Numbered from the stretch's first letter, positions 5,672-56,800 are shown. The stretch: DNA of 64,000 nucleotides from Macrostomum hystrix (GCA_950097015.1 CATNEN010000034.1:2604001-2668000); one strand, 5' to 3'. Notes: generated by a model from the letters alone, not told the origin. Made by a program: numbers and translations.

Positions 5672-5775
5672 AATACGCTGTCTCAGTTTGATAATCACGC
5701 AGTTTTAGCTTTGTTAAAGGTTGCTTTCAAATAAACACTCCGTCCAAATAAAAAAACCACACTCAGTCTATCGGC

Positions 5776-8700
5776 TCAGCCAGAGGGCCTGTCGGGCGGA
5801 TGTCCACGCAAGTAGTACACCCACTGAAGGGACGCTGCCGGCGCCGGTGGAGCGGGCGCAAGTGACGAGCAGTTTGGCCATCACAGCGTCCTGCCCCGCC
5901 TCGGCGCCCGGATTGAAGGCCACAACAATGCGGTACTCCTTGTGCGGCCGTACCGTGTCCCCGGGCTTGTGCACGGTGAAGGCCGGATTGTCCACCTGGA
6001 ATGTGAACTGAGTGGCCGACGGGAACACGTTGCGGAAGGCGATGGTGGTTGTGGCTCCGGCCTTCACAACGAACGGACCCTGTGGCTTCGGAGGCAGGCA
6101 CACCGCGTGCAGAGGAAACAGGTAGGCTCCAGCTGACTGGCTGGTCACCGTGAGGGCGCTCTTGATGTCGCCCAACCTGCAGGGTTCAAAGACGACGTCC
6201 AGGACGCCCTCAGAGCCTGGCGACACCGTGACGGCCTTGTCGCAGTGGAAATCGGCGCCAGGCTCGATGCGACAGGCGAAGTCAGCCTTGGAGCGGCCGT
6301 AGTTAACGAAGCGGGCCTGCAGCACCTGCTGGCCGCCCAGGTGAGTGGTGAAGTGGAGGGCTCTCTCCGGTCCTGGCTGGGTGCCCTTCAGGTCCAGCTC
6401 GTAGGTGAAGAGGCCGAGCTCCGGGCACTGAAGCTCAAGCTTGCCCCTGTAGTCCTGCGGCTTCAGCGGCAGGAACTCGATCTCAATCTGGCCTTGAGTC
6501 TGCTGAGGAATCTGCAGCTGGGACGGGACTCGGACCTCGGGCAGGGTGGTAGACACTGTCAGGGTCACTGGATGGGCCAGCGGGTTCTCGATCTGCGGGA
6601 TTCGGCGTGGGAGGCGAAGATGAGCTTCTGGACACAAAAACCTGCGCTATCAGCTCCTGAATTCAGAAACACCGTCAGAATCGCCTCACCTCAATGGAGT
6701 GCTGAACTGCCTGTCGCACTGGGCTGCTGAGGCTGATGGAGCCGACGCTGCCGGGCCGGCCCGCCTTGAGGAACACCTCGTAGGTGACGTACTCTCCCGT
6801 GTCCTCATTCTCAAATCGAATCCTCAGCTGGTACTGCGCCTCCCTGTAGCAGAACACGTGCAGCTTGTAGTCTCGCTTGGCGTCTCCGGGCACATCGATG
6901 TAGTCCAGTCCCTGGAAGGTGGTGCCAGCGTCGATCTTGTCCGGCTTGAGGATCTCCCTGGTGACCTTGAAGCGCTGGGCTCTCGGCAGCCAGTTCTGCA
7001 CTGGCAGCACCTCGTAGTGATCCATCTTGCACGGAATCTCCTGCGTCACCTTCAGCGGCCGCGGTTCCTCGGCTGATCCCAGCAGGTTGTACAGCAGCCC
7101 GGTGCCGTCTGGGAGGGCAAAGAACAGCGTGCCGCTGTGCTTCTTGCCATCAAGGGTCATCCTCAGCGGCCTGTACGTCAGCTCGTAGGTCTTTGTCTGC
7201 TGCGGCTCCACCACGAGGATATCCGGACCAGACCAGTAGTCGCCGTCGATGACTGGGCGAAGCTTCCACTGGGTGTGCGAGTTGTTGAATATCTGGATCG
7301 GCTTGGTGTCCTTCTGGCGCACCTGGCAGATAAAGTGCGGCGTCTCGCGCACCGGGGTTGCTGGCGCGCTAGTTCCGGTCAGGGTGAGGTCCAAATCCTT
7401 CCAGCCTTCGATGCGGCACTTGATGCCCTCAATGCGGATGTCCGCCTTGGCTTGGGTCGGCCTGAGGGAAAGCGGTTTGGGATCAGATTCTGAAACTCTG
7501 GCATGAGCGATGATTCTGAGCCCTGAGCACATGCTCACACAGGGTGTACATCTGCTTCGGCTTACTCATCGTCAGGCAGTGCACACACTCCCTGCGCCTT
7601 TGGGGTTTGGCCCTCATGGGCCAAAAATTACACGACAAGCCCCCTGAGCCTTCTCTACGCGACTGCGCCACAAACAAAAACGGAAAACTGACAAAAATGA
7701 ACAGAGAATCGAACCTATGATCTAATTTGACATAGGCGGGCTATGGATAAACTCACTTGAAGGTGACCTCGATGGTGACCTCAGCACCCGGGCTGAGATA
7801 GCCGGACTCGGGCGAGATCGAGAAGTCGGGCTTCAGCTTGGCGGTGTCCCAGGCGAACCTGGCGCCGATGTCACCGCAATTGTACAGGATGAGGCTGCGC
7901 TTGGACTGGCTGCCAACCACCAGCTTTGGCGGCTCCTTGCCGGCCTCGGCGAAGCTCGGGCCTGGCGGCAGGAAGCTGAGCAGAGCCGAACTCAGGCGGA
8001 ACTCGTGTGCCAGGCAGGCGCCGCGCACCGCCAGTACCGGGACCGGCGACAACGCCCAGGCCTCAGCCAGGACCTCCTCGGTGAATTGCGCCACCCGGCA
8101 GCTGGGCCGGAACGCGATCTCAACGTTCACCGTCTCCTGCGGATTCAGTGTCACCCGATCCTTCGGCTGCTTGATAGTCAGCGCGTCGCCACCGGCCAGC
8201 TCCTTGCTGGCTGGCGACACGACGAACCGCAGCGGCACAGGAGCCAGGCCCCGGTTGGTCACCGGAATCACCTTCTTCACTAGCTCGCCGATTTTTGCAA
8301 CGCCCAGGTGCACAATGCGCTGCCGCGGGTTCACCGGCTCGATGCGCAGCTCAGAGCCGCGGCCGGCCAGTTGGACGCTTGCCTGGGTCAGGCCGTTCAG
8401 CTCGAAGGTCACCGTCTCCTCGTAGCGCACGGCCTCTCTGGATTGGTGGCGGCGGGGATGGGACTCTTTAAGGTTGGGATTCTCTGTGGATGGGATTACT
8501 TGAGGATGGGATTACTTAAGGATGGGACTACTTGAGGATGGGATTACTTGAGGATGGGATTACTTAAGGATGAGTCTACTTGAGGATGGGATTACTTGAG
8601 GATGGGATTGCTTGAGGATGGGATTACTTGAGGATGGGATTACTTGAGGATGGGATTACTTGAGGATGGGACTACTTGAGGATGGGATTACTTGAGGATG

Positions 8701-11700
8701 GGATTACTTGAGGATGGGATTACTTGAGGATGGGATTGCTTGAGGATGGGATTACTTGAGGTTGGGATTACTTGAGGATGGGATTACTTGAGGATGGGAT
8801 TACTTGAGGTTGGGATTACTTGAGGGTGGGATTACTTGAGGGTGGGATTACTTGAGGATGGGATTACTTAGGGATGGGATTTTTCGTGGATGGGATTGTT
8901 GATATGTTGATATTTAGCGATTGATTCTCAAGAGGCTGGATTTTAATCTTGCGATATTCCTAGTATTCGAAAATTAGATTTTCGTTTGAAAACAACTTGG
9001 TTCGTAGCGGAAATTTACCTGGGCAGGAAGGTGAAGCTGCAGCTGGTTGACTGGCCGGGCTGCAGCAGGCAGGCCTTGAAGTCGTGGTGCAGCACTTGGC
9101 TGGTGGTGTACAGGCAGTCCACGGTGATTGGCCGGCTGTCCAGATTGTGTACAAACAGCTGCGCGGTGGCCGGATCCATCCCGGCCTGGAAGACGAATTT
9201 CGGCCCGAAGTCGTGCTTCGCCGTGGCGGCACTCTTGGCCGGATCTTTGCTGCCGAAGGCGAAGCCGATCTTTGGCTCGGTGGAGCCGCCCAGAACTGCC
9301 ACCTGGTAGGTCGGCCCGTTGGGCACGGTCAACACCAGCTGGGTGCCCTTCAGCTGGCAGCGTGACTTTGGCGCAAACACCAGCTCGCAAATCTTTCGCT
9401 CGCCGAACGGACCATTCGCTTCGACAGGCGTCACGGTGAGACTGTCGGGCCTCTTGCAGCCGGGGGCGAAGCTCCATGCAAAGTTCAAGTCGAATTTGCC
9501 CCTGTTCCACACCACCAGACGACGGCGGACCACCTCGTTGACTTCCACGGAGCTGAAGTCAAGCTGAGGAGAGACGGTTTAGGGAATCGGGGGGTAAAAC
9601 ACGTTACGGATCTCCATTCCCTCTCAAATTCCTATTGTCCTGTTCCAAAGTTTTCTCTTTCTTGAGATCACTTTCTCCTTCAGCTCGCATGCCAAACCGA
9701 CTCTCACCTGGCCGGGAGTTTTCTCAGAGACCGGCAGGCTCTGGCCGCTCTCAGGATCCTCAACGAGCAGGTCGGCCTTCATGCAGTAGCCCTCGGCCTT
9801 GACGTTCAGCGTCAGCGGTTCGGTCTTGTTTCGCACGTTGCAGCGCAGATTGAAGTTGGCCGGCTTCTCGGAGGTCAAGCAGAGCGTCATGGTTAGGTCC
9901 AGCCGGCCGCGCTTTGGCACCAGGCCGGACATTGGCTCCACCCGGAGGGTGTTGGGATGCCCCGGGCAGCGCAGCGAGTTAGGATCGATGTCAAATTGGA
10001 AGGCCTGGTCCTCCTCGTTAGTCATGTAGAATGTCTCCTGGGCTGTGAACTGCAGCAGTAGCGAGTTGAAATTGTGATGACTGCGGTCGAAGGCCACCCG
10101 CGGCTCCTTGGTGCGGCCGACCACCAGGAAGGGCAGGCTGACGCCGTGCGCTGGCACGCTGAAGCACCAGAAGCTCTCGGAGACGCCCAGCTTCTTCGGC
10201 ATGTATTCGAATGCGACCTCGGCGCCCCGGCCTGGCTCCAAGTAGCCGCCGCGGTCCAGGCACAGTATGCCGTTGTCGTCCTTGACGTTCTGGCCATCCT
10301 GGCACTCCCACTGGTAGGCGTATCCCACGCTAGTCGGGTTGACGATGTGGAAGCGGCGCAGGGCGCGGTTGTCGAGGCCGACGCTGTCGATTTCCACGAC
10401 TCGCGTGTCCGGATTTAGCTTGGCGCCAGGCGGCGCGCCGTTGGGTCCCGGCAGCTCCGGGTTACGCTTAGCGCCTGTCATTAAAGTACATTCGAGTTCT
10501 CATGTACTTTTAAACCACTGTTCTCGTCGTTGAAATAGATTTAAAGAGTTATTATGGTACATAAAATCCAGATATATTAAATTGAACATTTTTTAAAGTA
10601 AAAAAAATATTTTTTTGCACTTTTACTTTTAAAAGTACATATAATGTACTTTTTTCGTAGTAAACATAAAGTATTTTTATTAACAGAAGTAATTTTATGT
10701 ACATATACAGTAAATAAGCACACGTTCAGTGTTTTTAGAATGTTTTCAGTAAAAAAACGAACATTACTTTTTTATTCATCTGTTGGTTATTCACAAAGCA
10801 ACATACTAACCAGTCAGGTAATCCGATTGCGGCAATTCGAAGTGGCAGAACGGCTGCACAGACCGGCCCGTCACTGTGATGCACGGCGCCGCTGCCGCCG
10901 GTCCCTCCTCCAGGTTGGGCACCCGGCAGACCAGCCTGGCCTTGAAGCTGCCCAACGCCAGCGGCGCGAAGGCCAGCGTCACGTCGACTGTGCGGCCAAC
11001 TGGAACAGTGCCCGACTCGGGCTCAACGGCGAATGGCAGCAGGGCCTCCTGTCGGTTACTCTGACGAGCCGACTGGGGCCGACTGCTCGAGCCCGACGCC
11101 TGATCGTTGACGGTCTCCATGACAACCTGCCAGGAGAAGGCCACGGCTACGCGGCCAGTGTTGACCAGCTGGACCTGGTGCACGCGCCGCTGGAACAGCA
11201 GGGTGTCCCGGAACTGCACCGTCTCGGTGAGGGGCGCCAGCTTGCACTGATCAGCCTTGGCCGACACCAGCAGTTCCAGGCTGCGCTGACTGTCAGACAG
11301 TTCGGTGTGCTCCGGCTCGGCTTCCACTTCCACCACTTTCTTTTTGCGGCCAGCCGGCTGTGCCGGGTCGACTGGCAGCCAGCGCATTGTGCGCTTGGTG
11401 TCGTCCCAGTCGGCCGGGGGCGCCTCCTTGTAGGTGAGCTTGACCAGCCGGCAAGCGATTGGCTGGGCTCGAATCTCCTGCGGCTGGGCGGCTCTGTAGG
11501 TGGCCGCAATGGACTTGCTCTGGCCAGGGCGCAGGTGGCCCACGGCTGGCAAGAAGGTCACTCCGCTATCGCCAGAGCCAGTCGGGAATGCGAACCGCAC
11601 CGTGTCAGTCTGCGAGTGGTTGCACAACTGGAAGGTGAGAATCTTCGGCTCGACCAGGTAGCAATCGCCGAAGTGCAGGTGGTTGTGCTTGGCGGCTGAA

Positions 11701-14700
11701 AGTTACGATGGTGTGGGGAAAGCTTTGCAATTGAACCAGTAACTGGCGTATTCGTTAAAGTACAGACAACACACAGAAAGCTTAAATGGTACGCCCGTAA
11801 ATATAGACAGCAGAAGCAAAATAAGCAAAAGCAAAAGCATAAGCATTTCCAGGTTTGAAAACTAAAAATAGCTTCGATGTGTTACAGCTTCTACTCTTAG
11901 TGGCATGCGACGAACAGTTGTATTAAAAAATGACTACACCCAAAGTTTTCTGGTACAGTGGACCGAGGCAAGAAACGAAATACTTAGTATGAATATATTA
12001 TATATAATATGACGTTGTAATAATAAAATACTACGAGAATAATTTAGAAAGAAAACGGTGGAAGCAAAAAATACTAATCACAACGTTACGATCGTATTTC
12101 TGCGCTTTAAGCGGCAACGCCATTTTAAACTTTTTCGCTAGCAGAAATCGAAAATCGCAAAGATGTGCTGTGCTGTACCCTGTACTGTATATATAGAGTT
12201 GTTAACGCTTAAAGAACATGCAACCAAAAACCCATTTTCTAACCCAAATCGGATGAACAATTTTTCATTTTATCACGCCTCGGACCGCCGAAGCATAGCC
12301 TAGCTTTGAACAACCATAGAATAGCTGCACCCAGCACCCCATTTTCTCACCCCAGTCGGGTAGCCCTGACCAGCCCCGAAATGGCTGCACCCACCACCCC
12401 ATTTTCTCACCCCAGTCAGCCCTGACCAGCCCCGAAATGGCTGCACCCACCACCCCATTTTCTCACCCCAGTCAGCCCTGACCAGCCCCGAAATGGCTGC
12501 ACCCACCACCCCATTTTCTCACCCCAGTCAGCCCTGACCAGCCCCGAAATGGCTGCACCCACCACCCCATTTTCTCACCCCAGTCAGCCCTGACCAGCCC
12601 CGAAATGGCTGCACCCACCACCCCATTTTCTCACCCCAGTCAGCCCTGACCAGCCCCGAAATGGCTGCACCCACCACCCCATTTTCTCACCTTAGTCGGG
12701 TAGCCCTGACCAGCCCCGAAATGGCTGCACCCACCACACCATTTTCTCACCCCAGTCGGGTAGCCATGACAAGCCCCGAAATGGCTGCACCCACCACCCC
12801 ATTTTCTCGCTCCAGTCGGGTAGCTTTAACCAGCCCAGAAATGGCTGCATCCTCCACCCCATTCTCTCATCGTTACAGTGCAATTCAGTCTAGTACGACA
12901 GTAAGTAGGCGTAGCTAATCTACTACTTATAGTTACTTTAGTGCCAGCTACAAGAAACTACAACAAGAGCATACGAGACTAATACAGAGTTTGGATTTCG
13001 ATCTCTTTTAAACTGTCTCTTTACCCAGCTCCTGCAGACCGCCGATCTGATTTCCGCCAACGCCGCTACCGCTTCCGGTGCTTCCACCGGAAACGGCTCG
13101 TTGGCGCGACTTTTTGGCACTTCCGGATGCCTGCTGCTGCTGATGCTGCTGATCCGAGCGGGAGCTCCGTCTTGGTGGTCCTCTACTAGGACTGGCAAGG
13201 ACTAGGGCATTTAGGGATTCGATTTAGGGATGAGAGTATTGGAAGATTTGAGATGAGTTAAATTATTAAATGATTTCCTGTTCGTGGATTTTAGCTGAGG
13301 AGGTGCAGGTGCCAATATTTGTGCTTTTCTTGTGTGCAATAAAACCTACTTCTTGTTGTTTATTGTTTCTCTACAAAAGCTGACAGACATTCTTGAATGG
13401 CACGGTTTAGCCGGCCTTCCGAATTTGATTGGACGAGCAGGGGCTTGTGTTGCTGCTATATTTAGCTTATCTTGAGGGGAATCCCTTCTTAACTAGCTGT
13501 TAAGCCAAGCACGTGACTGATCTCAACCAATCAAATTTGGAAGACCATTTTGCAGTGTGGCATATATAGTTTTAATGTACATTAAATTTAATCCAAAAAA
13601 ATCTGCGATCATGGGTCAATGGTGTATTTTTATGGTGCCCGAACATTATTTCAGCAAGTGTAGTCATTGCGTGGGACTTCTGTGCTAAACAATGTGGCCA
13701 AAGCAATAGAGATTTTTTTTAACTCTCGAATGAGACGAAGAATGTGTCAGGGTTGAGACCCGAAAAGGTGGAGGGTCCTGGGTGCTTGTGGCAGTTGACA
13801 CGGCAATACGGGTGCGTGAGCGCAGAGCGAGGAAAATCAATTATCGAAAAACAAGCAGTTAATCATGCACAGCCGAGAATTCGTGTAAAAATGGACTGCT
13901 ATTGCGTTTTTGGACATTTCACACTTTCAACATGCTTATAATGATTGGGTTTGTTTACCTTCCAACTCTTTGCTGTCATCTGCTGGAAAATGATTGACAT
14001 TTAACAGTGATGGATTTAGAGTGTCAGTTCAAACGAAATGTTAGTAAAACAGTAGTATTAATTGTCAATATGTGTACAAAAATTAACAACTAACACAGAC
14101 CAAACTAAATCGATCGAGTGTATGTGCTCTTCTATACTCAAAATCAAGTCCGCGGTGCAAATTTGTGAAGCAATATTCAAACTCTGCTACTGACTTGCAC
14201 ATAATTGTAAGTAGTAAGTTTTGAAATAATACTGTTTTGAAAATCACGAACTTAAACCTCGACCCTGTCTCACCATTCGGTGTCTCCTCTGTCTCCTCTA
14301 CCGAGGCCGCCGCAGCCGCAGCGTTAGCCTCCTCAGCCAGCTCCAACTCCAGGTACTCGGTTGGCAGGTTCTCGAACGTCACCTCATCTTCGTAGCCTTC
14401 GCCGACCTGAATTTTCGGAGGAAAGCAGCAGAAAAATATCATTAATAAATAGCAAAGCTAATTAGATTCTTCCTAACAATAAAACTCACCAGGTGCACAA
14501 TGGTGTCCTCGTATTGGTTGTCCACTACGGCCACTTTGACCTGGGCGCTGGAGCGTTGCACCTGTCTGGGCCGGTAGATGGCGTCCAGTTCGGCCTCCTG
14601 GCCCGGCTCCAACATCAGCGCGGCCGTGTGCGGGTGACGCGATGTGCCAGCCGCCTGATGACCTGTGGGTAGGAAAAAAATCTTCATGATATTCGCAGCC

Positions 14701-17700
14701 AATAGGAGTGAGGCAAAGGGTTAGAGAATTTCAGGGCGGAGTGGGGTGGCTGAAACAGTCGGAACGAAGGTTTTTGGTGATGTACACCAGTCTAGAAGGG
14801 GTTGTTGCGAAGGTGGGCGTGAATTTTAACACACAAGCTCACCATCCGAAGCCCCGTAGGTCATCAGCGCTCGAGTTTCGGGCACCGCTGGCTCCAACCT
14901 GAAGCAGCCGTCCGGATCCATCAAGTCTAGATGCAGCCGAGCTGGCAGGCTGCCGTCGTTGCACAGCGCCATTCGCAGCCGCTGCTCTCTGCCAACCAGC
15001 AGCTTGCGGAACAGGCACAGCGGCTGGCCGCGCTTGTTGCGCGCCGTTGGTCGCGAGACGGACACCCGGGGCAGGTTGCCTTCGCCGGCTAGCTCAAATG
15101 TGAGGCTGCGACCCTTGGCCAAGCTGACTGGACCGCTGATTGCCGCCTCGAACACCGCCGTGAAGTTGTGCATCGACGGTGGACTAAAGTGCACGGTAAC
15201 AAACGTGTGGCCGCTGGCCGGAATCTGCGCCTTCACCGGTTCCAGCTCGAACATTTCAACGCCTGGCGCTGTTCCGCCCGCGCCGACGCCTCCTGTGGCC
15301 GCCGACGAGGACTTTCCGCCACCGCCACCGCCTCCACCGCCGCCAGCGACGCCGCCGGCTCGCTGAGAAACCGGTCGCAGGCCGAATGTCACGTCGACAT
15401 TGATGCGCGTCGGGTTGGACACGCGGAATCGGGCTGAGGAGCGGCAGCCGACCAGCACGCTGTTGAAGACGAACCGATTCTCCGCCTCGCCGTAGACTCC
15501 GCCGTGTCCGGCTGGCGAGTACGCGTTGTACAAGCTGAGGCTGCGGCAGACTCGGTGCTCCTCGAAGATGCTGGACCAGTCGGTGGTGTTGATGATGGGA
15601 ACGAAGGCTTCGCCAACGAGGCGGTAGCGAATGCCGCCGTTACCATCTCTGCGCAAGGGGTTGGTTTTGCTCATAGTATTGACTTGTGATTGCGATAATA
15701 CAATCTTTATTTTCAATAACCTACCGATCCAAGGCTGGATCGCGATCCGCAATGTCAATCAGCAGCTCTTCATCGCAGCGGCCCTCGGATTCGGCGATAA
15801 AGTCCACCTGCACAACCTTGGCTGTGCCGGGTGGCACCAGGTCAGCAGCCGGTTGAATCTGGAAGGCACCCGCCTGCAGCTTGCCTTGACCGCCCGCTTC
15901 GGCTCTGAAAGATTCGATTTATCGATTTATGTTTATTTTGATCTAGTCTGAATGTTTCACTATAAATTAGCCAATAAGAAGGATCGAAGAATCCAGATTG
16001 GTTGGCCTCGCACAGTGAGTCAGCGGGGGACAGGAAATCGGGGGACGAAAAACTGACAAATCTCTATAAATATATTAAATATGAGTTGTTGGACCAGCCA
16101 ATCAGCTTAGAGCGATCAGAGGACCGAGCGTTGAAACGAAGTCATATATTACTATAGAGAACCACAATAAAGGCTGCATTTTGTCACTGTCAAATAAAAC
16201 AAAGAATAAAGGAAGACAGAAACAAAAGATTACCTAAAGATTATGTTTCAGTTCTTTTAAGATTAATAAGTTGAAATGAAGGAAGATAGTTTATCTCGCA
16301 TGCCAGCAAGGTAGGCAAGACTAGGAAAATTTTATAGTCAGACACTTAAAGATAGCTTAAAAAAGGCAAGGCTTTTTGGAAGGCTTTTGTGACAGACCGA
16401 ACTCGATTCCAGCTGACGCGAGACGACAAGCCGCGGTTCGGCTCGAGAGTTTTTGGCTCGCTGTAACAAAAGTTAGCAATTATCTGCATTTCCTAGCTTT
16501 AATAAAGCCGAAGGAAAGAAATGCATTTTTTTAAACAAAAAAGCCCCTCTTCGAAGGGCAGCTGCTACAAGGTTCTTTTAGTGGAATTAAGTAGTGATAA
16601 TAAAACTGCAGATGCTAAAAGGTTAGTGTTAAGCATGACGCTATCTTCGTTAATCCTCAGCTTCATCGCGTCATTACGGGGGTGGGCCTCAAGTTACTGA
16701 CCTGATGGCTTCCACCTTTTTCGGCTTGACCACTGAGCGCCCGGAGCTGGAGCCGTCACGTGATTTGGCTCGCTTATGAGGTGCTGGCAGGCTGTGAAAT
16801 TTAGAAATTAGAAAAATTGAAAGTAAAAGTAAAAATAACAAAATCGGTGAAGGAAGGTAAGGTATATCATAAGAGATGTGAAGTTTTAGACAGCACATAG
16901 GTGAGCGAATGTCACAAAATGCAGGCGTGACAGGCAGATTACACAAGAGAGTGAGGTTGCCTATCTTCTCTGTCGGGCTATTGAAATTTTTCTTGTGTGA
17001 TTTAAAGCGGCGTAGATTAAATGTTAATCATTGATAGTCTCTGGACACGGGATCCGTTGCACTAATCTATTTACATTCTACTAAGACCCTTGCTGTAGTT
17101 GGCTCCCTTGCCAAATTGGCCAGGAGCTCGACTAGGAGCGGCTAGGCTGGCTCGAGATGCCAACAGCTGCTGCTGCTGCTGCTGCTGCTGTAAGCTGTCG
17201 CCAAGTCCACCAGGAAGGATTTCAGCAGTTGGCTGTTGACTGTAAGGTGATGTCTAATTGTCTGTGCGTGTTCGCGAAACCTGCCCTCTTGTGATTTTTC
17301 CTTGCTTCTCTATTCATTCTACCCCTGAGCGTACAAATCCGCGAGGAGCTATTTATAGAAGAATGTACATTCTAATTGACTACATTCTCTACCCTCCTTG
17401 GGCGAGTTGCTATTTATAGAACAATGCACATTCTAATTGATTACATTCTCTACCCTCCATGGGCGAGTTACTATATATAGAACAATGTACATTCTAATTG
17501 ATTACATTCTCTACCCTCCATGGGCGAGTTGCTATATATAGAACAATGTACATTCTAATTGACTACATTCTCTACCCTCCATGGGCGAGTTGCTATATAT
17601 AGAACAATTTACATTCAGTTTTAACACGAACATGAAACATTAACAAAGCAAAGAGTGAAACAACATTTGATTTCCAAAGACTCAGTAGATTCAAGTCATA

Positions 17701-20700
17701 AATGACGATGGTAAAAACAGAACGGGTTCACACAGAAAAATTAAACAACAAGCAGGTCAAATAACACAGGACATTGCGTGTTCAACCACCAACAGTGGCA
17801 ATATGCACTAGTGTAAGGGTGTGCCATCAAACAGACACAAAACGATATCACATGCGAACTGTATGACAATATCTAGGAATTTATTCTTAGCCACATAGAG
17901 ATAGTCTGCGTTCTCACATATTAAGATAGTATTAATAATTATGTCACTTTTCGAACGGACAATATGCAGCTAAGTCCAACTAAATGATGTGGGAACAGGT
18001 CCACGGGACATACTAAGCGAAAACTGACTTGTCAAATTTGGTGCTTAGCTTTGTCCAGTTGACTGCGCTGGTTTTGTCGAGTAGAGGGTAAAGGGTGAGC
18101 TATTGTAGATAATGGGTTGGCGATGATCTACTCACAAAATGTATTGTTCTATCAAAACAAGTCTAAAGAAGATGGCGACATGAAAAAGCATGCGAAAGTT
18201 GTTCGTATTTAGCTAAATTATTCATAGTTTTAATGCCCATGTAACAAAGCATTTAATAAATTTCATAAGCGATCCGACTTTGAAAAACAACAAAAAATTG
18301 TATCACTTCAAAACAAATCTCTATATGCGTTGTTATTATGCGAGTGAAAATTCGCGCGCCAAAAACAAAAATGTTTGATTTCTAATAAATATTTTGTAAC
18401 TTCGAGAAAGATTCGGCCTGCCCGCCTACCCCTGCAGTGGCGGAGCCATGATTGTGTCGCTAAAAATCAAGTTCGGAAAAATTATGGGATAAGAAAATGA
18501 TATTTTCATCCTTATAGCGCCATCGAAAAGTAAAAAAGTACTAAAAGGCACATTAAATTGTTCCGAGTGATCATCGATACTCACCCTTTGCCTCCCTTGG
18601 CGGCTGTAGCCGCGGCGGCAGCCATGGCCTCCTTAACTTTGGGATCCTCAACTGTCTTGCGCGTTATGACAAACCGGAATTCGTGCTGGCCGCGGTTCTC
18701 AATTTGGAATGAGCGGGTCTTGCGAGCCTGCACCATGACCGCGCCGAAATTCAGATCAGACGACGGCGAGATGACGAACTTTGAGTACACCGCCTGGGCG
18801 CTGACCTTCACTGGAATGGAGGCGATCAGCTCGCCACTGTCTCCCAGGGACGGCTCGATTACCTCGCAGAACAGCAGCTCCTGCAGCTTGACGGACACCT
18901 CGCGGCTGGAACGGAAGGTGATGTTGATCGGCACGGTGCGATCGTTGGGCAGCAGGATGCCAGCGGCCGGCTGGATGTCGAAGAGTTCCTCCAGCTTGAT
19001 TGGCGCCTTGCAGCGGCGACAATTTCCGCTAGTTTCGTCTGTTCGGCAGCGGCATTTCAGCACAAACCGGTAGCGAATCTCGTAGCTGCCTTTGTTCTTC
19101 AGGCTCAGTTGAACTTTCTCTTCTTCGCCAACTTTTTTAACGCCGAAGTCCACGGAGCCGTCGTTGCCCTTTGGAAAGCTGAGGTCGATGGCCACGTCGT
19201 AGGCCTCCGCAGAGATGTTCACAGTGAGTGTCTCGAGTACGCCGAGGATGTTGTCAACATCGAATGTTTCGATGCGAATGGAGCGCTTCTGGCTAAGTTT
19301 GTAGGGCCGCATTGCTCTGAAGAAGAAGTTCACGCAGCCCTCGGATTTCGGCTCCAGAGTGCCGGAGTCCTGGTTCACGGAGAAGTCCTCGCCGAGAACC
19401 TCGAGGCCGGAGATGCGCCAGTTGATGGGCAGGGAAGTTTCATTTCGCATGAAGAGCTGCTTGACGTCCTTGCGCTGGAGCAGCACCTTCTCAAACTGCA
19501 GGGCGGTCTTGTCCAGCAGCAGCTTGGGCCGGACGCACTCGCAGGCGAGGCGCAGCAGGATTGGCTCGGGGTTCTCTCGCACGCAGGCCACAATGGCGTC
19601 TTCGTAGCGCAGCTCCTTGAGCGGGTGGGCCCACACGGTGAGTGGCTGCGACTCGCCAGGCGCCAGGGTCATGGCGCTCGGCTCGAACGAGAATGTTTCA
19701 CCCTTGACGTCGCTCAGGAGACAGAAATTTATGTCAGCCTCCATCGGGCTGGAGTTGTGAATGGTGAAGGTCTCGCGGTTCTCCGGATAGACGCCGTCCT
19801 TGATCTTGTCCTTGGTCTTGCCGACCAGCAGCGGCCCGAACTCGAACACCTCGGTGGCCAGGATGTACTTCTTGCTGATCACCTCGTCTTTGGCCTTGGC
19901 CTTGCGGCGCTGCGGGAACAGGATCCTGGGCTCCCGGCTGATGGTTGGGAAGGCGCACAGGCCGCGGCAGAACAGCTGGTAGCGGGTGCGCCAGCCCTGG
20001 ATCTCGAAGTTAAGGGTCTGGTCGAACTGGCCGAGATCATCGGACATGAAGCGGGTGCGGATTCGAACCACGCCGTTCGGCGGTATCACCCAGCGGTAGG
20101 TGCCGATCCTGTTCAATGTTAAATAATGGGATAATGCAGATTCTGTATTTAGGTTCTGTGTTTGCTGAAGCAAACGAATAAATGAGAAAACAAATGAGTA
20201 TGAAAAAACAAAAGAAAAGCCAGATTTGCTACTCGCTAAGTAAGAAAATCAACAGAAAACACGCTAGAAAGTTTACCTACCAAGAGAACAAAAATCTAAC
20301 CAAGTAGAGTTACAAAAAGCAGAGTCAGTTTGAAGCGCATTTAGAATTACACAGACAAGGCTAGCTGTATAAAAACTAATTGATAAAAAATGAAACCCCG
20401 CTAGTCTTACGGCGGTTCCGGCTTTTCAAGTTCGCCTGCTTCCTCAGCAGCTACCGAGCTGTTTGGTGGGAGAGTAAAACTGTTTTCTTTCAAAGCAGCG
20501 TTTCAAATTGAATGCAAAGACAATGAATGGTTGGATTTCTAACGATATCATTCTAGTTTAGTCTTTGTTGTCGTTAGTATAAAACAGCAAATATGTCATT
20601 ATGGTGAAGAAGGCGGGACAAATGAATTAATTTAGGGCTTGTTACGCATTTTGCGATATTGGGGACCACAGCCAAATGTGTGTTGAGAGTGAACACTGCC

Positions 20701-23700
20701 TGACGATGAGAAAATCGGGGCAGATGCACACACCTGTTTGAGAACGTGCCTAAGTGTACTCAGGAATAAACTCAGGACTCTTTCTCATGCCACTCGGGAC
20801 AGTCGGGCGCACTCACCTGGGCTCCTCCTTCTTCTCTTCCTCCTCTTCCACCTCCTCCTTGCCGGCTTTGCCGCCCTTCTTTCCCGGACTCTTGCGCGTG
20901 TCGCGTCTGGACTCCGAGCGACGACTGCTAGACTTCGTGGAGCCGCCCAGCTTTGAACTGGACGAGTGCATGTCCTTGGCGTCTGACACCACCGACCTGG
21001 TGTCGCTTGTCTCCTCGCCGGCTTCGCCCGACGGGTGCACGCCGGCTGCGGCGGTTGTCGGCGGCGGCGCGTTCGGATCCTCGACCTGGGAGCCCAGGAA
21101 GGCGTAGTGGCCTCCGAGGGCCTCGCCAGCCAGGTAGTTCGGCGGCCGGCGCTTCTGCGGATAAGTCACCACGGAGAACAACGCGTCCGGCGGCTGCGGC
21201 GGACCCGACGGTCCCAAGCCGAGGCCGTCGAGAATTTCGCCCGGCTGTGGCAGCTTGCCGCACTCGAGCAGCCGAGGACCGGGCGGATCCTCGGGACAAT
21301 GATAGACTATCAGGTGCGGCACTCCCAGACCGTCGTCTGGGCGGCGCAGCTCCCGGATGAAGCCAGGCTCCGGTGTGCCTTCCGCGGCTTCGGCCGCTGC
21401 AAGAGCCTCCGCCTGAGCTGCTGCCAGAGCCTCAGCTTCGGCTGCCTCGCGAGCGAGTCGCTCGACCTCCTTGGCGTCAGCCTTGCCGCCCTTCTTGCCA
21501 CGACCGCCGCCGCCCGCGCCGCCTCCACCGCCTCCGCCGCCACCGCCCTTCTTGCCAGAGGTGGCACCGGCGTCCTCTCCGCCAGCGGCTCCGGCCTGAC
21601 CATCAGGGCGGCCCTCCGAAGGCGTCGCCGGCCGTCGAATCGCCAGGCAGCTGCGGTCCCAGTAGGCCAGCAGGTCGATTACATTTTTCACTTCGTGCTC
21701 GAAGGTCTTGAAGCGCTGTCGCAGCAGACGCTCTGCCTGCTTCACAGGGTCGTCAGCCTCCGCTGCGGCCTCCGCGGCTGCCGCTGCCGCCGCGGCCTCC
21801 TCTTCTCGCAGCTCCTCGGATTTGGAACGCTTCTTGCGCTGCTGCTGCTGCTGCTGCTGCTTTTCCTGGTCGGACTTCTCCGTGGCGTGGCTCTCCGGCC
21901 TGGTGTCTTCCTTGCCTTTCAACAGCGAGGCCTCCTTGGTGACCTCCTTGCTCTTGCCACCCGCAGCTGCTGCCGCGGCAGCAGCCTTCGCCTGCTGCTG
22001 AGCTGCCTTGGCTGTGAGGGACGAGGGATTATGGAAAAGCGAATTGTCAAAAATTTCAACACTCATCGTTAGGCAAATGTCCCTATTTTAGAATTTATCC
22101 AATTCAGAATTTATCCCTATTTCAGAATCTATACCCATTTCAGAATCTATCCCAATTTCAGAATTTATCCCAATTTTAGAATTTATCCCAATTTCAGAAT
22201 TGATCCCATTTCAGAATTAATCCCAATTGCAGAAATTATCCCCATTTCAGAAATTATCCCCATTTCAGAATTCATCCCCATTTCAGAAATTATCCCCACT
22301 TCAGAATTCATCCCCATTTCAGAAATTATCCCCATTTCAGAATTCATCCCCATTTCAGAAATTATCCCCACTTCAGAATTCATCCCCATTTCAGAAATTA
22401 TCCCCATTTCAGAATTCATCCCCATTTCAGAAATTATCCCCATTTCAGAATCCATCCCCATTTCAGAATATATCTGCATTTGATAATCCATTATAACACA
22501 TCCCCATTTCTTAATCTATCCTATTTAAAAGTGCGGGAAAAATCCCACCGCCCACCTTTGTCATCCCCACCAGCTGCCGGCTTTTTCTTCCGCCGATTTT
22601 TCTCCTCCTCCATCTGGCGCAGCTGGGCCTCCATGCGCTGCTGCTCCTCTTCAATCTTTCTCTTCTTCTCTTCCTTTTCTTTGCGTCGGCGTTCTCGTTT
22701 GATCTCAAGCCTCTTGGCGTCGACCGCCTCGCGCTCGGCCTCGGTCAGGGCCTCGTACTCGTCCTCGTCCATCTCCTCCAGGCGCCGTCTCTCCTCCTCG
22801 GCCTCGCGCTGCTTTCGCTCCTCCTCTTCGGCCTCTTTGCGGGTCTATTTTTTTAGATCGAGTCAATTTTAGCTTACACGTGCATGTCATACTACTTATT
22901 TATAACATGCATGTGTAAGTGTCAGTAGGAAGTACGAGCATGACAAAATGCATACTTTTTAATTAAACAAAAATCCTACACACCTGTCGATCCTTGTAGG
23001 CGGCAAAGTCCAGCTTTAGTGTGACGAAAAAGATGAACTTTCGATTGTTCAACGCTTTCAGCACGCACTGAAGCGCCGCGGTGGAAGTGTTGCAAAAAAG
23101 AGTGTCAAGACTGTCAATAACAATGCCCTTTGAGCAGTCGTTAAGCTGGAATCTGTCCGAGAGCAACTCAACTAGGATCTCCTCTGGCAGCACAGTGGAC
23201 AGAAGGCCGTCGTCGCTTGCCGAAATGCTCAGTTTTCGAGCGATCGGCGCGGCTAATGGTGGCGGACTGGATGGCACCTGGTGAGCAGTGGGTTGGGGTG
23301 GTAATTTTGTGATCGGCTGGCAGAATGGGGTTGGGAAGATTGTGATTGGCTAACAGGATATGGGATTGTGATTGGCTGGCAGGATGACGATTGTGATTGG
23401 CTGGCAGAATGGGTGATTGTGATTGGCTGGCAGGATTGGGGACTGTGATTGGCTGGCAAAATGGGTGATTGTGATTGGCTGGCAGGATGGGGAGACTGTG
23501 ATTGGCTGGCAGGATTGGGGACTGTGATTGGCTGGCAAAATGGGTGATTGTGATTGGCTTGCAGGATGGGGAGACTGTGATTGGCTGGCATGATGGGGGA
23601 TATTGTGATATGATTGGTTGACCCAAGCCTAACATTCACAAGACAACATAATTAGTGAGTTAGTGACTAGAAAACATTTTCTGGAATTCTTCGAAAAAGG

Positions 23701-41700: not shown

Positions 41701-42831
41701 AAGTGCGTACATTATCATCGAAGTAAATAATCTTTGGCAGCCTTTTCCGTTCCTGAAAAAATTGTAGACAATCAAATCATTAAATCTCAGACAGTTAAGC
41801 ACATACGATGAGGTGAAATGTTTGACTGTGTAATAATTGCCTCAATGAAGGCACTGACAACAAATCGCTTTTAACTTATTCCTACAAGTTAAAAACGATT
41901 TGTATTAATTTTTATTGATTTTTGTTTACAAAAAAGTTAAATCAATAAAACCTTCACGTCAAGTCATTCTAAGAACACAAAGACATTTCAACAATAACGG
42001 TTATTGGGTTGAAATTTGATCTCAACTGTATGCACTTTTATTCTCTCTTATCTCCCTCTCCATCTGCATCTCTAATCTCACTCCCTCCTTCTGCATCTCT
42101 AATCTCACTCCCTCCTTCTGCATCTCTAATCTCACTCTCTCTATCTGCATCTCTAATCTCACTCCCTCCTTCTGCATCTCTAATCTCACTCCCTCCTTCT
42201 GCATCTCTAATCTCAGTCCCTCTTTCTGCATCTCTAATCTCACTCTCTCCTTCTGCATCTCTAATCTCACTCCCTCCTCCCTCTTTCGATGCATATCAAG
42301 TATCACTCACCCACTCTCTGACCCCAATAATGTATTAATCGAGGCAAAGCTTAAAGAATGTCAAACAGGCAGAGCGCGATACGTTACAAAAAGTTGCACA
42401 GAAGATTCGGACGCCTCACCCTCTGATGCGTGGTCTCGCCCATGTCCAGTAGGCTGAGTTTCTTTGGCAGCTGCATATTGTGCGTGTTGGCCAGCTTCTT
42501 CTCAGTGGTCAGCGACATTTGAAACATGTACTGCGATGGCGTCATCTAGGGTGAGAGAGAATTTGTTGCAATTGTAAAAATACTGTTAGATTACTATTGG
42601 CACCTACCTATGATCATTGTAAATCGTAAATAATAATTTTGATTGTTATTGCCTAATTAAAATTTTAATTAGTGAAACTGCCAAACTCACTTTGATTGGC
42701 GGCAGCTCATCTCGGATGAGTTTTGGGTTGCGGGGAGCCACCACGCGACTCTCATAGTTGCGCGCTTCTGGGTCCAGCGAGTCGAGGGTGCCAGTGGTGC
42801 CCAGCACTTCGCCGAATGGGCCCAGCGGCAT
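5776..42831 (-). CDS. HYDIN: HYDIN, axonemal central-pair apparatus protein; complete multi-exon gene, roughly 5,400 aa
   Basis: N-terminal exons read MPLGPF...PPIK | MTPSQYMFQMSLTTEKKLANTHNMQLPKKLSLLDMGETTHQR | FSQVDIEEPIFQPYPSELVFVNYEPNIAHELPLLLRNNDK | VPRLVKVVQADSPYFKIISP...EREKFVVPVRCVGARAILDFPD, matching the known HYDIN N-terminus. Many ASH/Ig-like repeats, an ADK-like P-loop segment (IIVHGAPLSGKS) and a terminal WVYYLRG motif. Hand-traced GT-AG exons, phases consistent: 42831-42691, 42545-42420, 40231-40112, 39279-38945, 37580-37082, 35095-34641, 33841-33443, 33360-33171, 32792-32358, 31469-31023, 29642-29505, 29130-27928, 27846-26019, 25291-25164, 24204-23941, 23277-22984, 22844-22556, 22011-20817, [20458-20411], 20108-18585, [17239-17075], [16791-16702], [16460-16398], 15904-15725, 15648-14843, 14662-14490, 14406-14274, [13201-13025], 11695-10811, 10474-9708, 9563-9019, 8437-7757, 7461-6690, 6592-5776 (brackets = skippable candidates). 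Confidence 0.96.
7515..7676 (-). mobile_element. SINE fragment (central body) in the 7462-7756 HYDIN intron
   Basis: Reverse complement gcgcagtcgcgtagagaaggctcaggggcttgtcgtg...gagggccaa...gtgcactgcctgacgatgagtaagccgaagcagatgtacaccctgtgtgagcatgtgctcag aligns with the other copies. Confidence 0.7.
8455..8895. repeat. Intronic minisatellite, 16-bp unit GGATGGGATTACTTGA
   Basis: Fills most of HYDIN intron 8438-9018. Confidence 0.95.
12325..12870. repeat. Intronic minisatellite, 56-60-bp unit (G-run-rich on the minus strand)
   Basis: atggctgcac recurs at 12381, 12437, 12493, 12549, 12605, 12661, 12721, 12781 and 12841. Confidence 0.95.
13025..13201 (-). CDS. HYDIN: Candidate HYDIN cassette exon, 177 nt, phase 1-1
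   Basis: ccctag|TCCTTGCC...GAGCTGG|gtaaag; open in the HYDIN frame (LASPSRGPPRRSSRSDQQHQQQQASGSAKKSRQRAVSGGSTGSGSGVGGNQIGGLQEL); GC-rich island; both flanking exons are phase 1. Confidence 0.65.
16398..16460 (-). CDS. HYDIN: Candidate HYDIN micro-exon, 63 nt, phase 2-2
   Basis: ttttgttacag|CGAGCC...GTTCG|gtctgt; open frame EPKTLEPNRGLSSRVSWNRV; weak donor. Confidence 0.45.
16702..16791 (-). CDS. HYDIN: Candidate HYDIN exon, 90 nt, phase 2-2
   Basis: ttcacag|CCTGCC...ATCAG|gtcagt; open frame LPAPHKRAKSRDGSSSGRSVVKPKKVEAI. Confidence 0.7.
17075..17239 (-). CDS. HYDIN: Candidate HYDIN cassette exon, 165 nt, phase 2-2, with Q8 tract
   Basis: ccttacag|TCAACAG...AGAAT|gtaaat; open frame QQPTAEILPGGLGDSLQQQQQQQQLLASRASLAAPSRAPGQFGKGANYSKGLSR. 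Confidence 0.6.
17320..17615. repeat. Intronic tandem repeat, about 61-bp unit, about 4.5 copies
   Basis: gggcgagtt recurs at about 17400, 17461, 17522 and 17583. Confidence 0.9.
20411..20458 (-). CDS. HYDIN: Candidate HYDIN micro-exon, 48 nt, phase 2-2
   Basis: ctcccaccaaacag|CTCGGTAG...GAACCGCC|gtaaga; open frame SVAAEEAGELEKPEP. Confidence 0.65.
20660..20765 (+). mobile_element. SINE fragment (central hairpin region)
   Basis: gagagtgaacactgcctgacgatgagaaaatcggggcagatgcacacacctg aligns with the other copies. Confidence 0.65.
22085..22480. repeat. Intronic minisatellite, 18-bp unit AAATTATCCCCATTTCAG
   Basis: Direct tandem periodicity. Confidence 0.93.
23295..23620. repeat. Intronic degenerate minisatellite built on GATTGTGATTGGCTGGCAG
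   Basis: About ten GTGATTGGCT cores at variable spacing. Confidence 0.9.
24240..24920. repeat. Intronic minisatellite, 19-bp unit CCTCCCTCCACTCC(G/A)CTGT
   Basis: Direct tandem periodicity. Confidence 0.95.
25705..25910. repeat. Intronic tandem repeat, about 60-bp unit, about 3.5 copies
   Basis: tagaca(c/a)ccacctc recurs about every 60 bp. Confidence 0.88.
29172..29430 (+). mobile_element. tRNA-derived SINE copy, internally deleted and 3'-truncated (HYDIN intron)
   Basis: TGGCAGAGCGGT...GAGCTCGATTC head; body clearly aligns with the 39548 copy. Confidence 0.75.
29720..30930. repeat. Intronic degenerate minisatellite, 20-bp unit AATCATTCCGTACCAAATAT
   Basis: Fills most of intron 29643-31022. 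Confidence 0.93.
31590..32275. repeat. Intronic minisatellite, 26-bp unit AAATTATCCCCATTCTGATTCAGTCT
   Basis: Direct tandem periodicity. Confidence 0.95.
33852..33858 (-). promoter_or_regulatory. Perfect TACTAAC branch-point sequence upstream of a HYDIN 3' splice site
   Basis: gcTACTAACctccctgcag| at 33842-33860. Confidence 0.6.
33915..34625. repeat. Intronic minisatellite, 31-bp unit ATCTCACCCCATCTCACACCCAGGATCTCCA
   Basis: Fills intron 33842-34640. Confidence 0.95.
35120..36600. repeat. Intronic minisatellite, 20-bp unit TGTCATTTCTAGGATTGATT
   Basis: Direct tandem periodicity, about 70 copies. Confidence 0.96.
36615..37056. repeat. Intronic micro/minisatellite, 9-10-bp units GGAGTTTT(T)G
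   Basis: Abuts the 20-bp array within the same intron. Confidence 0.95.
37600..38930. repeat. Intronic minisatellite, 22-bp unit TTTCGGTGGTGTCAGGTTCTCA
   Basis: Fills essentially all of intron 37581-38944. Confidence 0.96.
39548..39870 (+). mobile_element. tRNA-derived SINE, near full-length copy (HYDIN intron 3)
   Basis: GGGGC start, A-box-like AGGCAGAGCTG, B-box-like GGCTCGATTCC, shared body (gtgtacactgcc...gcagatgtacac; gggcagaattgcctcctcgctggctgcgggtctagtgtcaccaaat) and AT-rich tail; related copies elsewhere in the window. Confidence 0.8.
40800..41590. repeat. Intronic minisatellite, 23-bp unit TCAGTTCTTCAGGGTCTTATCC(C/A/T)
   Basis: Direct tandem periodicity. Confidence 0.95.
42055..42285. 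repeat. Intronic minisatellite, 27-bp unit CTGCATCTCTAATCTCACTCCCTCCTT
   Basis: Direct tandem periodicity. Confidence 0.93.
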
Positions 42832-53800: not shown

Positions 53801-56800
53801 TTTCCATACTCCTTGAACATGCCCTTGAGTTGGGTGAGCACGGAGGCCCATTCGTCGGCCATGTAGCGCTCGTTCTGCACCACAACTCGATAGAAATCTT
53901 CGTACAGCAGTGTGCTCCCGTCATCGCCACATAGCGGAGCTTCGCGCACCGTCCCACTAGAGCGTAATAGCTCGGGCAGAGAGGTGAAACCACCAGGCGC
54001 GTGGTACTGCACTCGACTGACCAGCACTATGGTGACATCATGGCAGCAGGCCTGCGGTGATAGGCGTTGTGTTCACGGGGAGGTGCGTATTGCTTTGTTC
54101 TGATAGCTTTTCTGTTGACTTTAAGCTACATTCACTGCCTCTAGGGTTTCAAATAGTTTGATTAGGAATCCACTCTTCGTACTAGTGTCTTCAAGACATC
54201 AGATTAATCTTCCGTTGTGACGTAGAGGGCATTCAGAACGTAAAAAATCTGCTATCGGTGTGTTCAAACGTTAGTCATCCCACCGGTTGCTTAAAAACGT
54301 CACAATTTGCGACTGGTGTCTTTAGAACGTGATTCAGTATTCCGTCAGTTTTCCTACCAGTGTCTTTAGAACGTCAGTTTTCCTACCAGTGTCTTTAGAA
54401 CGTCAGTTTTCCTACCAGTGTCTTCAGAACGTCTGTTTTCTTACCAGTGTCTTCAGAACGTCTGTTTTCCTACCAATGTCTTCAGAACGTCAGTTTTCCT
54501 ACCAGTGTCTTTAGAACGTCAGTTTTCCTACCAGTGTCTTTAGAACGTCAGTTTTCCTACCAGTGTCTTTAGAACGTCAGTTTTCCTACCAGTGTCTTTA
54601 GAACGTCAGTTTTCCTACCAGTGTCTTTAGAACGTCAGTTTTCCTACCAGTGTCTTCAGAACGTCAGTTTTCCTACCAGTGTCCTTAGAACGTCCGTTTT
54701 CCTACCAGTGTCTTCAGAACGTCAGTTTTCCTACCAGTGTCTTTAGAACGTCAGTTTTCCTACCAGTGTCTTCAGAACGTCAGTTTTCCTACCAGTGTCC
54801 TTAGAACGTCCGTTTTCCTACCAGTGTCTTTAGAACGTCAGTTTTCCTACTAGTGTCTTTAGAACGTCCGTTTTCCTACCAGTATTTTAAGTCATCAGTT
54901 TAAAAATCAGTGGTAGGAAAACTGACGTTCTTAAGACAGTGTCTTTTAAAGGTCGCAATTTTCTTACCGGTCTCTTTAGAACCTTCCTAGATTTCTTTGG
55001 AACACCTTGTCACCCTCCTGTGTATCCCCGAGTCCGCTGCTCATTGCTCACCTGTTTATTCCACCTTGAGAACAGCTCAGGCAGGAAGCCGGATACGCAC
55101 TTTTCAAAGTACAAATCGCCGAAAGCGTCAAATTGCCACATCTCCTCGGACATCTGGATGAAAATGTGTACAACTGAGCTGCTCGACCTGTACACAAATC
55201 TGGTGTGCTGGCCGACGAAACCGCAGGCAGCTGGCGACCCATTGCGCCACATCTGGCCGACTGTGCCTCGCGGACTGCCGAGAAACTCCAGCTTCTTGCC
55301 TTCGTACAGGGCACAGTGACGCTGAGACTGAGCGAATTGATAAAAGTCGCCACGGCCGAGATAGACATCTTTGATTAGCAGCTCAACCAGGTCCACAGTG
55401 ACACTCTCCGTAGACACCTGGCGAACCAGAACTTCCTGTAAATACGCAGATTATCTGCTTTTATGAAAAATGCAGATAAATGGTTTCACTGTCCGATCAA
55501 GACGTTTGAGTGTCAGATGAAAGGTTCCAGTGCCAGAATAAAAGCCCCCGTGTCAGATGAAAGGTTACAGTGTCAGATGAAAGGTTCCAGTGTCAGATGA
55601 AAGGTTCCAGTGCCAGAATAAAAGCCCCCGTGTCAGATGAAAGGTTCCAGTGTCAGATGAAAGGTTCCAGTGTCAGAAGAAAGGTTCCAGTGTCAGATGA
55701 AAGGTTCCAGTGTCAGAAGAAAGGTTCCAGTGTCAGATGAAAGGCTCCAGTGTCAGATGAAATGATTGAGTGTCAGATGAAATGATTGAGTGTCAGATGA
55801 AATGATTGAGTGTCAGATGAAATGATTGAGTGTCAGATGAAATTTTTGAGTGTCAGATGAAAGGTTCCAATAGATGAAAGTTTCCAGTGTCAGATAAAAT
55901 GTTTGAGTGTCAGATGAAAGGTTCCAATGTCAGATGAAAAGTTCCAGTGTCAGATGAAACGTTCCAGTGTCAGATGAAAGGTTCCAGTGTCAGATGAAAG
56001 GTTCCAGTGTCAGATGAAAGGTTCCAGTGTCAGATGAAAGGTTCCAGTGTCAGATGAAAGGTTCCAGTGTCAGATGAAAGGCTACAGAGATTAATTAAAT
56101 GTTCCAGTGACTGATAGATGCTCAAGAGATAGGTAAAATATTCCAGTTTCAGATAAAAGGCTCCAGTGTCAGATGAAAGGTTCCAGTGTCAGATAAAAGG
56201 CTCCAGTGTCAGATGAAAGGTTCCAGTGTCAGATAAAAGGCTCCAGTGTCAGATGAAAGGTTCCAGTGTCAGATGAAAGGTTCCAGTGTCAGATGAAAGG
56301 CTACAGTGATTGATTAAATGTTCCAGTGTCTGATAGATGCTCAAGAGATAGGTAAAATGTTCCAGTTTCAGATAAAAGGCTCCAGTGTCAGATGAAAGGT
56401 TCCAGTGTCAGATGAAATGTTCCAGTGTCAGATGAAAGGCTACAGTGATTGATTAAATGTTCCAGTGTCAGATGAAAGGTTCCAGTGTCAGATGAAAGGT
56501 TCCAGTGTCAGATGAAAGGCTACAGTGATTGATTAAATGTTCCAGTGTCTGGTAGATGCTCAAGAGATAGGTAAAATGTTCGAGTTTCAGATAAAAGGCT
56601 CCAGTGTTAGAACACAAAAACTCAATCTATGAACCTGAAACTTGCGCAGGCCAAAAGCAGTCGCCAGGCTCGTATCCAAGCTAATCGAGTCCTTCTGCGT
56701 GAAGTCGTCTTTCAGGCAGCGAATCTGCACCAAGAAGGCGGACCTTGGACCACCGGTAGGCGGAATGATCTCAAGCAAGCTGCCAGGACGTAACTCTGGA

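Follow-up and report, generated by a model that had tools for sequence, protein, structure and literature searches.

Introduction

Human minisatellites occupy a small fraction of the genome and cluster towards the ends of chromosomes; they often have a high GC content and a core in common. Arrays inside genes have been described in amphioxus as "mirage" or splice-junction minisatellites, in which the unit spans an exon–intron boundary and can carry AG and GT, each cluster shows concerted evolution of its copies, and normal splicing is undisturbed (PMC3087553). In the flatworm genus Macrostomum, simple and tandem repeats identified by Tandem Repeats Finder (TRF) account for 15% of the M. lignano genome (PMC5730564), and for M. 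hystrix the RepeatMasker table assigns 1.96% of the genome to simple repeats and 0.00% to satellites, with the full repeat account deferred by its authors (PMC10468722). Neither of these two Macrostomum papers links arrays to introns, and no paper describing minisatellites in Macrostomum or tying them to introns was found in the searchable literature. Here, we describe the tandem arrays in a 64,000-nucleotide stretch of the Macrostomum hystrix genome (GCA_950097015.1, CATNEN010000034.1:2604001-2668000; the whole stretch is referred to as the window), most of which lie in the introns of two genes, HYDIN and DEPDC5. An original prediction made from the sequence had regarded them as a candidate for an undescribed system acting in introns. 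Such a system was not supported; the arrays are likely to be ordinary locus-specific minisatellites that arise from a genome-wide mutational habit of M. hystrix and not an intron device.

Results and discussion

Tandem arrays in the introns of HYDIN and DEPDC5

Arrays were identified with TRF and counted if they were at least 100 bp long. The window contains approximately 29 separate arrays of this kind, covering 27.5% of its length, and all those listed in the original prediction were recovered. Twenty-four are located in the introns of HYDIN (minus strand, 5771..42831; 27 predicted coding exons, 26 introns, and ~5,247 codons) and DEPDC5 (minus strand, 44870..57009; 11 predicted coding exons, 10 introns, and the ATG at 57009). 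HYDIN extends beyond the lower limit stated in the original prediction and reaches down to 5771. The exon models were built by a dynamic programme using codon bias and splice sites, which was trained on clear exons. Intron 2 of DEPDC5 was placed at 54052-55051 because of an alignment to the solved human DEPDC5, and the remaining boundaries of this gene, whose splice sites are model-based, are possibly tens of nucleotides off.

The DEPDC5 arrays have units of 20 bp in intron 1 (52.3 copies, 55509..56549), 29 bp in intron 2 (18.7 copies, 54343..54883), 19 bp in intron 4 (22.9 copies, 51677..52133), 26/13 bp in intron 5 (50223..50754), 27 bp in intron 6 (8.6 copies, 49421..49652), 21 bp in the compound array of intron 7 (48004..48386), 21/42 bp in intron 8 (47316..47607), 23 bp in intron 9 (15.9 copies, 46464..46829), and 27/54 bp in intron 10 (45698..46000). 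These agree with the predicted units; the array that had been called variable is the degenerate one of intron 5, with only 67% matches. Intron 3 is the sole one of the ten that lacks an array.

Thirteen HYDIN introns carry arrays of this minimum length of 100 bp, in line with the prediction of at least 12, and two of them contain two arrays each. Intron 2 holds a 23-bp array (34.2 copies, 40804..41590) and a 27-bp array (8.8 copies, 42044..42278), and intron 4 a 20-bp array (71.9 copies, 35117..36558) and a 9-bp array (49.7 copies, 36607..37056). Single arrays are found in introns 3 (22 bp, 59.9 copies, 37614..38931), 5 (31 bp, 22.2 copies, 33932..34619), 8 (26 bp, 26.4 copies, 31592..32276), 9 (20 bp, 51.8 copies, 29881..30924), 11 (61 bp, 3.3 copies, 25710..25908), 12 (19 bp, 35.6 copies, 24242..24918), 13 (26/53/79-bp higher-order array, 23332..23601), 15 (18 bp, 22 copies, 22080..22474), 17 (61 bp, 4.5 copies, 17341..17616), 21 (56 bp, 9.5 copies, 12320..12869), and 24 (16 bp, 27.6 copies, 8456..8897). 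Three introns described as almost pure satellite, 33842-34640 (intron 5), 35096-37081 (intron 4), and 37581-38944 (intron 3), consist of array for 86%, 95%, and 97% of their length, respectively, and their GT..AG signals lie exactly at these positions.

Overall, 22 of the 36 introns are occupied, namely 9 of the 10 DEPDC5 introns and half (13) of the 26 HYDIN introns, the other half being free of arrays. The units of the 24 intron arrays are all different, and no unit is common to any two arrays of the window, in agreement with the claim that units are not reused. Arrays account for 48.7% of the intron DNA, whereas not one of the 20,856 exon bases lies in an array, and the closest approach to a splice site is 13 nt at donors and 15 nt at acceptors; thus the exons are indeed untouched. 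Occupancy depended on intron size: an array was present in 22 of the 24 introns of at least 430 bp, whereas all 12 shorter introns lacked one. The introns that carry arrays vary in length from 438 to 3140 bp and thus show no target length. After subtraction of the arrays, the large introns have a median length of 224 bp, and the median of the array-free introns is 162 bp. A search of the array-free introns at a lower TRF threshold detected no proto-arrays, except for two 2-copy duplications. A donor-side preference was rejected, since 13 arrays are nearer to the donor and 9 nearer to the acceptor (p = 0.52).

The evenness per intron claimed for the window is statistically real, and it would be expected of a process directed at introns that seeds one array in each of them, serving intron length, exon definition, chromatin marking, or intron gain by tandem duplication. 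Under such a process, occupancy would be more even than under random assignment, as is the case, and the presence of exactly one array in 9 of the 10 DEPDC5 introns (P = 0.004 under uniform assignment) would be explained. The respect that the arrays show for splice signals and exons also fits. Against an intron-directed process, half of the HYDIN introns are free of arrays, and the lengths of 438–3140 bp do not point to a regulated intron size.

Array density outside introns

The five window arrays that are not in introns are distributed over the spacers between genes. A 22-bp array (66.6 copies, 57449..58913), which lies in no coding intron, is flanked by the upstream gene, whose stop is at 59189, and by the DEPDC5 ATG at 57009. 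An 18-bp purine-rich array with many GA-rich look-alikes (4496..4809) and a 56-bp array (3.8 copies, 5440..5652) are located between the HYDIN stop and the start of an M28 peptidase gene, and a 22-bp array (63.5 copies, 1348..2743) and a 23-bp array that extends beyond the window start (1..629) are downstream of the M28 peptidase. The window contains four spacers between genes: one separates the stop of the upstream gene from the DEPDC5 ATG, one the DEPDC5 stop from the HYDIN ATG, and one the HYDIN stop from the M28 ATG, and the fourth lies downstream of M28. Arrays account for 46.0% of these spacers, compared with the above 48.7% of introns.

The comparison was extended to five 40-kb blocks (200 kb) taken at seeded random positions of the genome, whose pieces were labelled L001-L020. 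Together with the window, the pooled set comprises 264 kb and 127 arrays. Array cover in the random blocks was 30, 28, 51, 25, and 35% (mean 33.9%), at 0.49 arrays per kb. Coding segments in the sample were called by codon bias on both strands at three score thresholds. Gaps between segments on opposite strands must hold intergenic DNA and were therefore used as an intergenic proxy. The array fraction was 0.28–0.34 in opposite-strand gaps and 0.30–0.39 in same-strand gaps, with overlapping bootstrap intervals at the three thresholds. In addition, runs of 7–9 arrays without any detectable coding segment between them were observed in the random sample. The spacing of arrays in the sample had a coefficient of variation (CV) of 1.10, compared with an expected 1.00 (range 0.85–1.17), which fits random placement; regular spacing was accordingly rejected.

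An enrichment of arrays in introns over intergenic DNA was thus not found, either in the window or in the sample. The original prediction had itself named equal density in intergenic DNA as the observation that would speak against a process tied to introns, and since this equality was found, the intron-specific reading fails. Equal density in spacers and strand-switch gaps and the long runs of arrays without detectable coding segments argue against an intron-directed process.

Sequence character of the arrays

The arrays of the window have units of 9–79 bp in 3–72 copies with 67–97% matches, and the 127 arrays of the pooled set have a median period of 25 and a median length of 497 bp. The GC content of the arrays (44.8%) is close to that of non-coding DNA (42.1%) and differs from that of coding DNA (62%). 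In 22 of 29 cases, the array fades into unit-like flanks. Higher-order periods of 21/42, 26/53/79, and 27/54/81 bp were observed; such periods are the usual mark of unequal exchange.

The possibility that the arrays are artefacts of assembly or polishing was considered because long-read assemblies can mis-size tandem arrays. No evidence supporting it was found, and its probability is negligible. The arrays (0.2–4 kb) are well inside the PacBio read length, their copies carry individual substitutions and higher-order structure, and the GT..AG signals around them are intact with the reading frame kept across. The share of simple and tandem repeats given for the genome of M. lignano (15%; PMC5730564) also speaks against an artefact.

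Flanking coding segments allowed the orientation of 48 arrays to be determined. Of these, 26 had a positive and 21 a negative GC skew, and for the AT skew the numbers were 25 and 22, respectively. Donor-like motifs were more frequent on the sense strand of 9 arrays and on the antisense strand of 6, and no avoidance of donor-like GTRAG motifs on the sense strand was found among the orientable arrays. Features of orientation or sequence tied to transcription or splicing were therefore rejected. No exon sequence was found in the array units. Strand bias, donor avoidance, splice-side preference, GC content, and shared k-mers all gave no sign of function. The proposed roles in intron length, exon definition, and intron gain were not borne out, given the absence of strand bias and of donor-motif avoidance and the wide range of intron lengths. 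These results, together with units that lack exon sequence and one array with 42 donor-like motifs on the sense strand, make an intron-directed process very improbable.

The array with these 42 GTRAG motifs is the 31-bp array of HYDIN intron 5 (33932-34619), in which they lie downstream of the true donor; it is naturally suited to testing how cryptic donors are ignored in M. hystrix. In the random sample, a 1.2-kb array of 30-bp units (L004:2955-4170) coincides with a minus-strand open frame of coding-like codon usage; this array possibly encodes protein, as a minisatellite with repeats of 10 residues.

Privacy and origin of the units

Whole-genome searches with 25 of the 29 window arrays were performed against 220,453,370 bases in 42 contigs. 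The closest look-alikes showed 65–84% identity, mostly 65–75%, and nothing was found above ~84%. Each short-unit array has look-alikes at 65–80%, and the purine-rich 18-bp array has some of up to 84%. Units of 26 bp or longer have few or none; the 61-bp array of HYDIN intron 17 has zero, and the 56-bp array of HYDIN intron 21 has only two weak ones. Eight look-alike loci were inspected. In those of the 19-bp array in DEPDC5 intron 4, the unit is 16, 18, or 23/46 bp long, and the similarity is confined to a short core. As a chance null, 53,975 composition-matched permuted arrays were used, which is half of the estimated genome load. For units of up to 23 bp, the null produced matches of 71–81% over 300–1,300 bp by chance, and for longer units it produced essentially none. 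Most look-alikes are thus the chance expectation from ~100,000 arrays. The 31-bp and 19-bp window arrays have at least 25 look-alike loci, somewhat above the null.

Within the 264 kb, 103 of the 127 arrays have no relative. The other 24 fall into nine groups, with 26 related pairs compared with 1.5 in column-permuted controls; dispersed array families therefore exist, as a minority. Among 236 flanks, 10 pairs are shared (several of them trivial overlaps), compared with 103 pairs in control segments. Conserved flanks at several loci, as expected for arrays borne by transposable elements, were not found for the window arrays. A modest k-mer excess was the only trace of a common core motif, and since the top k-mer occurs in at most 19% of units, a shared core was rejected. 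A dispersed satellite family with the same monomer at high identity in many loci was likewise rejected, as the best match of the 25 window arrays searched is ~84%. The private units, the low identity of look-alikes, and the unshared flanks support the claim of a local origin of the arrays, as opposed to dispersal of one satellite family.

In an improbable alternative, the arrays would derive from a restricted set of dispersed satellite families, or from arrays carried by transposable elements, that landed in introns and spacers and were then homogenised at each locus until they looked private. The 24 related arrays in nine groups and their excess over permuted controls fit this explanation, as do a 16-bp family on three contigs with both flanks shared and the 31-bp and 19-bp window arrays with their above-null numbers of look-alike loci. 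On the other hand, look-alikes of window arrays do not exceed ~84%, those of the 19-bp array differ in period, and units of 26 bp or longer have few or none. The arrays have unique flanks, and even the commonest k-mer is found in no more than 19% of units. Furthermore, only 13–33 nt are left between array and splice site in the fullest introns, which provides no room for element termini.

The 16-bp-unit family lies outside the window, at L002:2745-5228, L006:1914-2189, L015:6169-6683, and L016:3025-4587. Both flanks are common to two of its loci (89% and 80%), and it is the only family of this kind; it is therefore element-borne, unlike the private arrays. In another case, adjacent 18-bp and 23-bp arrays recur in inverted orientation at L007:5431-7562 and L011:3159-4200 with 87–91% identity. 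The two loci are ~6 Mb apart on one contig (C1) and represent a duplicated segment that brought its arrays along.

Proposed origin of the arrays

The observed distribution of the arrays, their private units, the equal density outside introns, the absence of strand bias, and a GC content like that of local non-coding DNA are consistent with neutral arrays formed by duplication and exchange. A short local non-coding stretch would be duplicated in tandem, and slippage or unequal exchange would then amplify and homogenise it in place, to roughly 0.3–1.5 kb. This process may act at any unconstrained sequence, that is, in introns, in spacers between genes, and probably in untranslated regions. Arrays that touch exons or the 13–40 nt of splice signals would be removed by selection, and such selection would leave array ends just inside the splice sites. 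If ancestral introns were small, each would offer essentially one free patch, and a grown array would leave 13–100 nt per side with no start site for a second. The one private array per intron may thus follow from the single unconstrained site in small introns.

Several observations weigh against this explanation. The number of occupied introns in the window (22) is higher than under uniform assignment, which would give 17.7 (P = 0.007), and than under assignment in proportion to array-free length, which would give 13.1 (P < 0.0001). The intergenic class is a proxy derived from crude coding-segment calls, and the comparison covers 264 kb only. The data come from one haploid assembly of one species. 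No greater degeneracy of array edges than of centres was detected, with identities of 0.894 and 0.881, respectively (not significant), in a test that is weakened by TRF trimming and register drift. AT-rich unique stretches poor in arrays occur at 42832-44869 and over most of 11696-14273 and 15905-18584, and therefore array birth is not uniform per base. Among the 127 arrays, the length centres on ~0.5 kb (geometric mean 510 bp) for units from 7 to 45 bp. The copy number is bimodal, with almost no arrays of 5–12 copies: for units of 12–45 bp, the counts were 61 (<3 copies), 12 (3–5), 5 (5–8), 9 (8–12), 19 (12–20), 30 (20–35), 15 (35–60), and 13 (>60). A simple slippage equilibrium predicts neither the bimodal copy number nor the length of ~0.5 kb.

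Because of the bimodal copy number and the independence of length from period, we also consider, tentatively and as a rather less likely reading, an unusually active, lineage-specific array-forming process in Macrostomum. It would drive nearly any unconstrained patch to an array of ~0.5 kb, giving ~100,000 private minisatellites that amount to roughly one third of the genome, determine most of the intron size, and are nearly missing from the published repeat annotation.

The array-poor stretches, namely 42832-44869, which sits upstream of HYDIN, and those in HYDIN introns 17 and 21, are 2–2.7 kb long, have 35–41% GC, and are single-copy and non-coding; in their scarcity of arrays they differ from the remaining non-coding DNA. 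They may represent constrained regulatory DNA.

On the reading of ordinary minisatellite growth throughout the genome, intron size in this model flatworm is probably determined by the arrays, because the big introns shrink to approximately the size of small ones when the arrays are removed. If the 200-kb sample is representative, approximately a third of the M. hystrix genome would be private minisatellite. This would affect repeat masking, gene prediction, the design of primers, guides, and transgenes, read mapping, and estimates of neutral sequence, and would make the M. hystrix genome a natural system for studying the birth and characteristic length of minisatellites.

Genes and dispersed elements of the window

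Every recognisable gene in the window is on the minus strand, including the M28 peptidase exon (2941-4203). Exons were queried singly. HYDIN was identified by the Pfam Hydin_ADK domain and many HYDIN/CFAP65 Ig domains, and DEPDC5 by the Pfam IML1 N-terminal domain and DEPDC5_CTD. Two DEPDC5 exons match the solved human DEPDC5 end to end, at residues 83-211 and then 210-425, and the translation from the ATG at 57009 gives a typical DEPDC5 N-terminus. A word search with the 1,048-aa HYDIN exon returned bird HYDIN fragments only, and exon 4 as the query returned two short proteins with 52–57% identity. DEPDC5 exon 1 (56635-57009) encodes glutamine runs close to the N-terminus, and a later exon contains CAG-type trinucleotide repeats (52217-52268). 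These are coding low-complexity inserts, which the aligned regions of the human protein lack.

A SINE-like (short interspersed nuclear element) dispersed element of ~340–360 bp is present at 39548-39884 and 61396-61757 in opposite orientation, with fragments at 29264-29433, 7516-7674, and 20684-20742. It looks SINE-like because it has a tRNA-like head, with the B-box-like GGCTCGATTCC, and lacks terminal inverted repeats; ARAGORN called no tRNA on it. An initial scan returned over 3,000 candidates in the genome, and the copies are 88–93% identical. Fragments of this element pad some mid-sized array-free introns, namely HYDIN introns 10, 16, and 25. An unrelated 184-bp dispersed element is located in DEPDC5 intron 7 (48438-48620), and its copies on other contigs are 88–96% identical.

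Comparison with known repeat systems

The published M. hystrix table (1.96% simple repeats and 0.00% satellites) contrasts with the 33.9% array cover in the random 200 kb, and annotation based on repeat families apparently misses private arrays. Like the "mirage" minisatellites of amphioxus, the window has minisatellite-like arrays inside genes. In contrast to them, its arrays touch no exon or splice site (gaps of 13 and 15 nt), and a splice-junction minisatellite was rejected because no array overlaps an exon. The euchromatic dispersed repeats of Tribolium (PMC4675708) are resembled by a minority, namely the 24 of 127 arrays in multi-contig families, one of which has shared flanks. Unlike families of the Tribolium type, the window arrays have no close copies elsewhere and have unique flanks.

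The arrays also resemble classical minisatellites, or variable number tandem repeat (VNTR) loci, such as those of human introns. Units of 9–80 bp, a head-to-tail arrangement, lengths of 0.2–4 kb, a unit specific to each locus, unique flanks, occurrence in both introns and intergenic DNA, copies homogenised to 82–97% matches, and higher-order periods are all shared. In unit size, unique flanks, and locus-specific unit, the arrays fit the structural definition of a minisatellite. Unlike human minisatellites, those of M. hystrix have the GC content of the local non-coding DNA, and no shared core was found. They also differ from classical minisatellites in abundance: at ~0.5 arrays per kb, they cover roughly one third of the DNA that was sampled. 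The arrays are a known kind of element at an unusual abundance, and a new mechanism of splicing or chromatin is not indicated.

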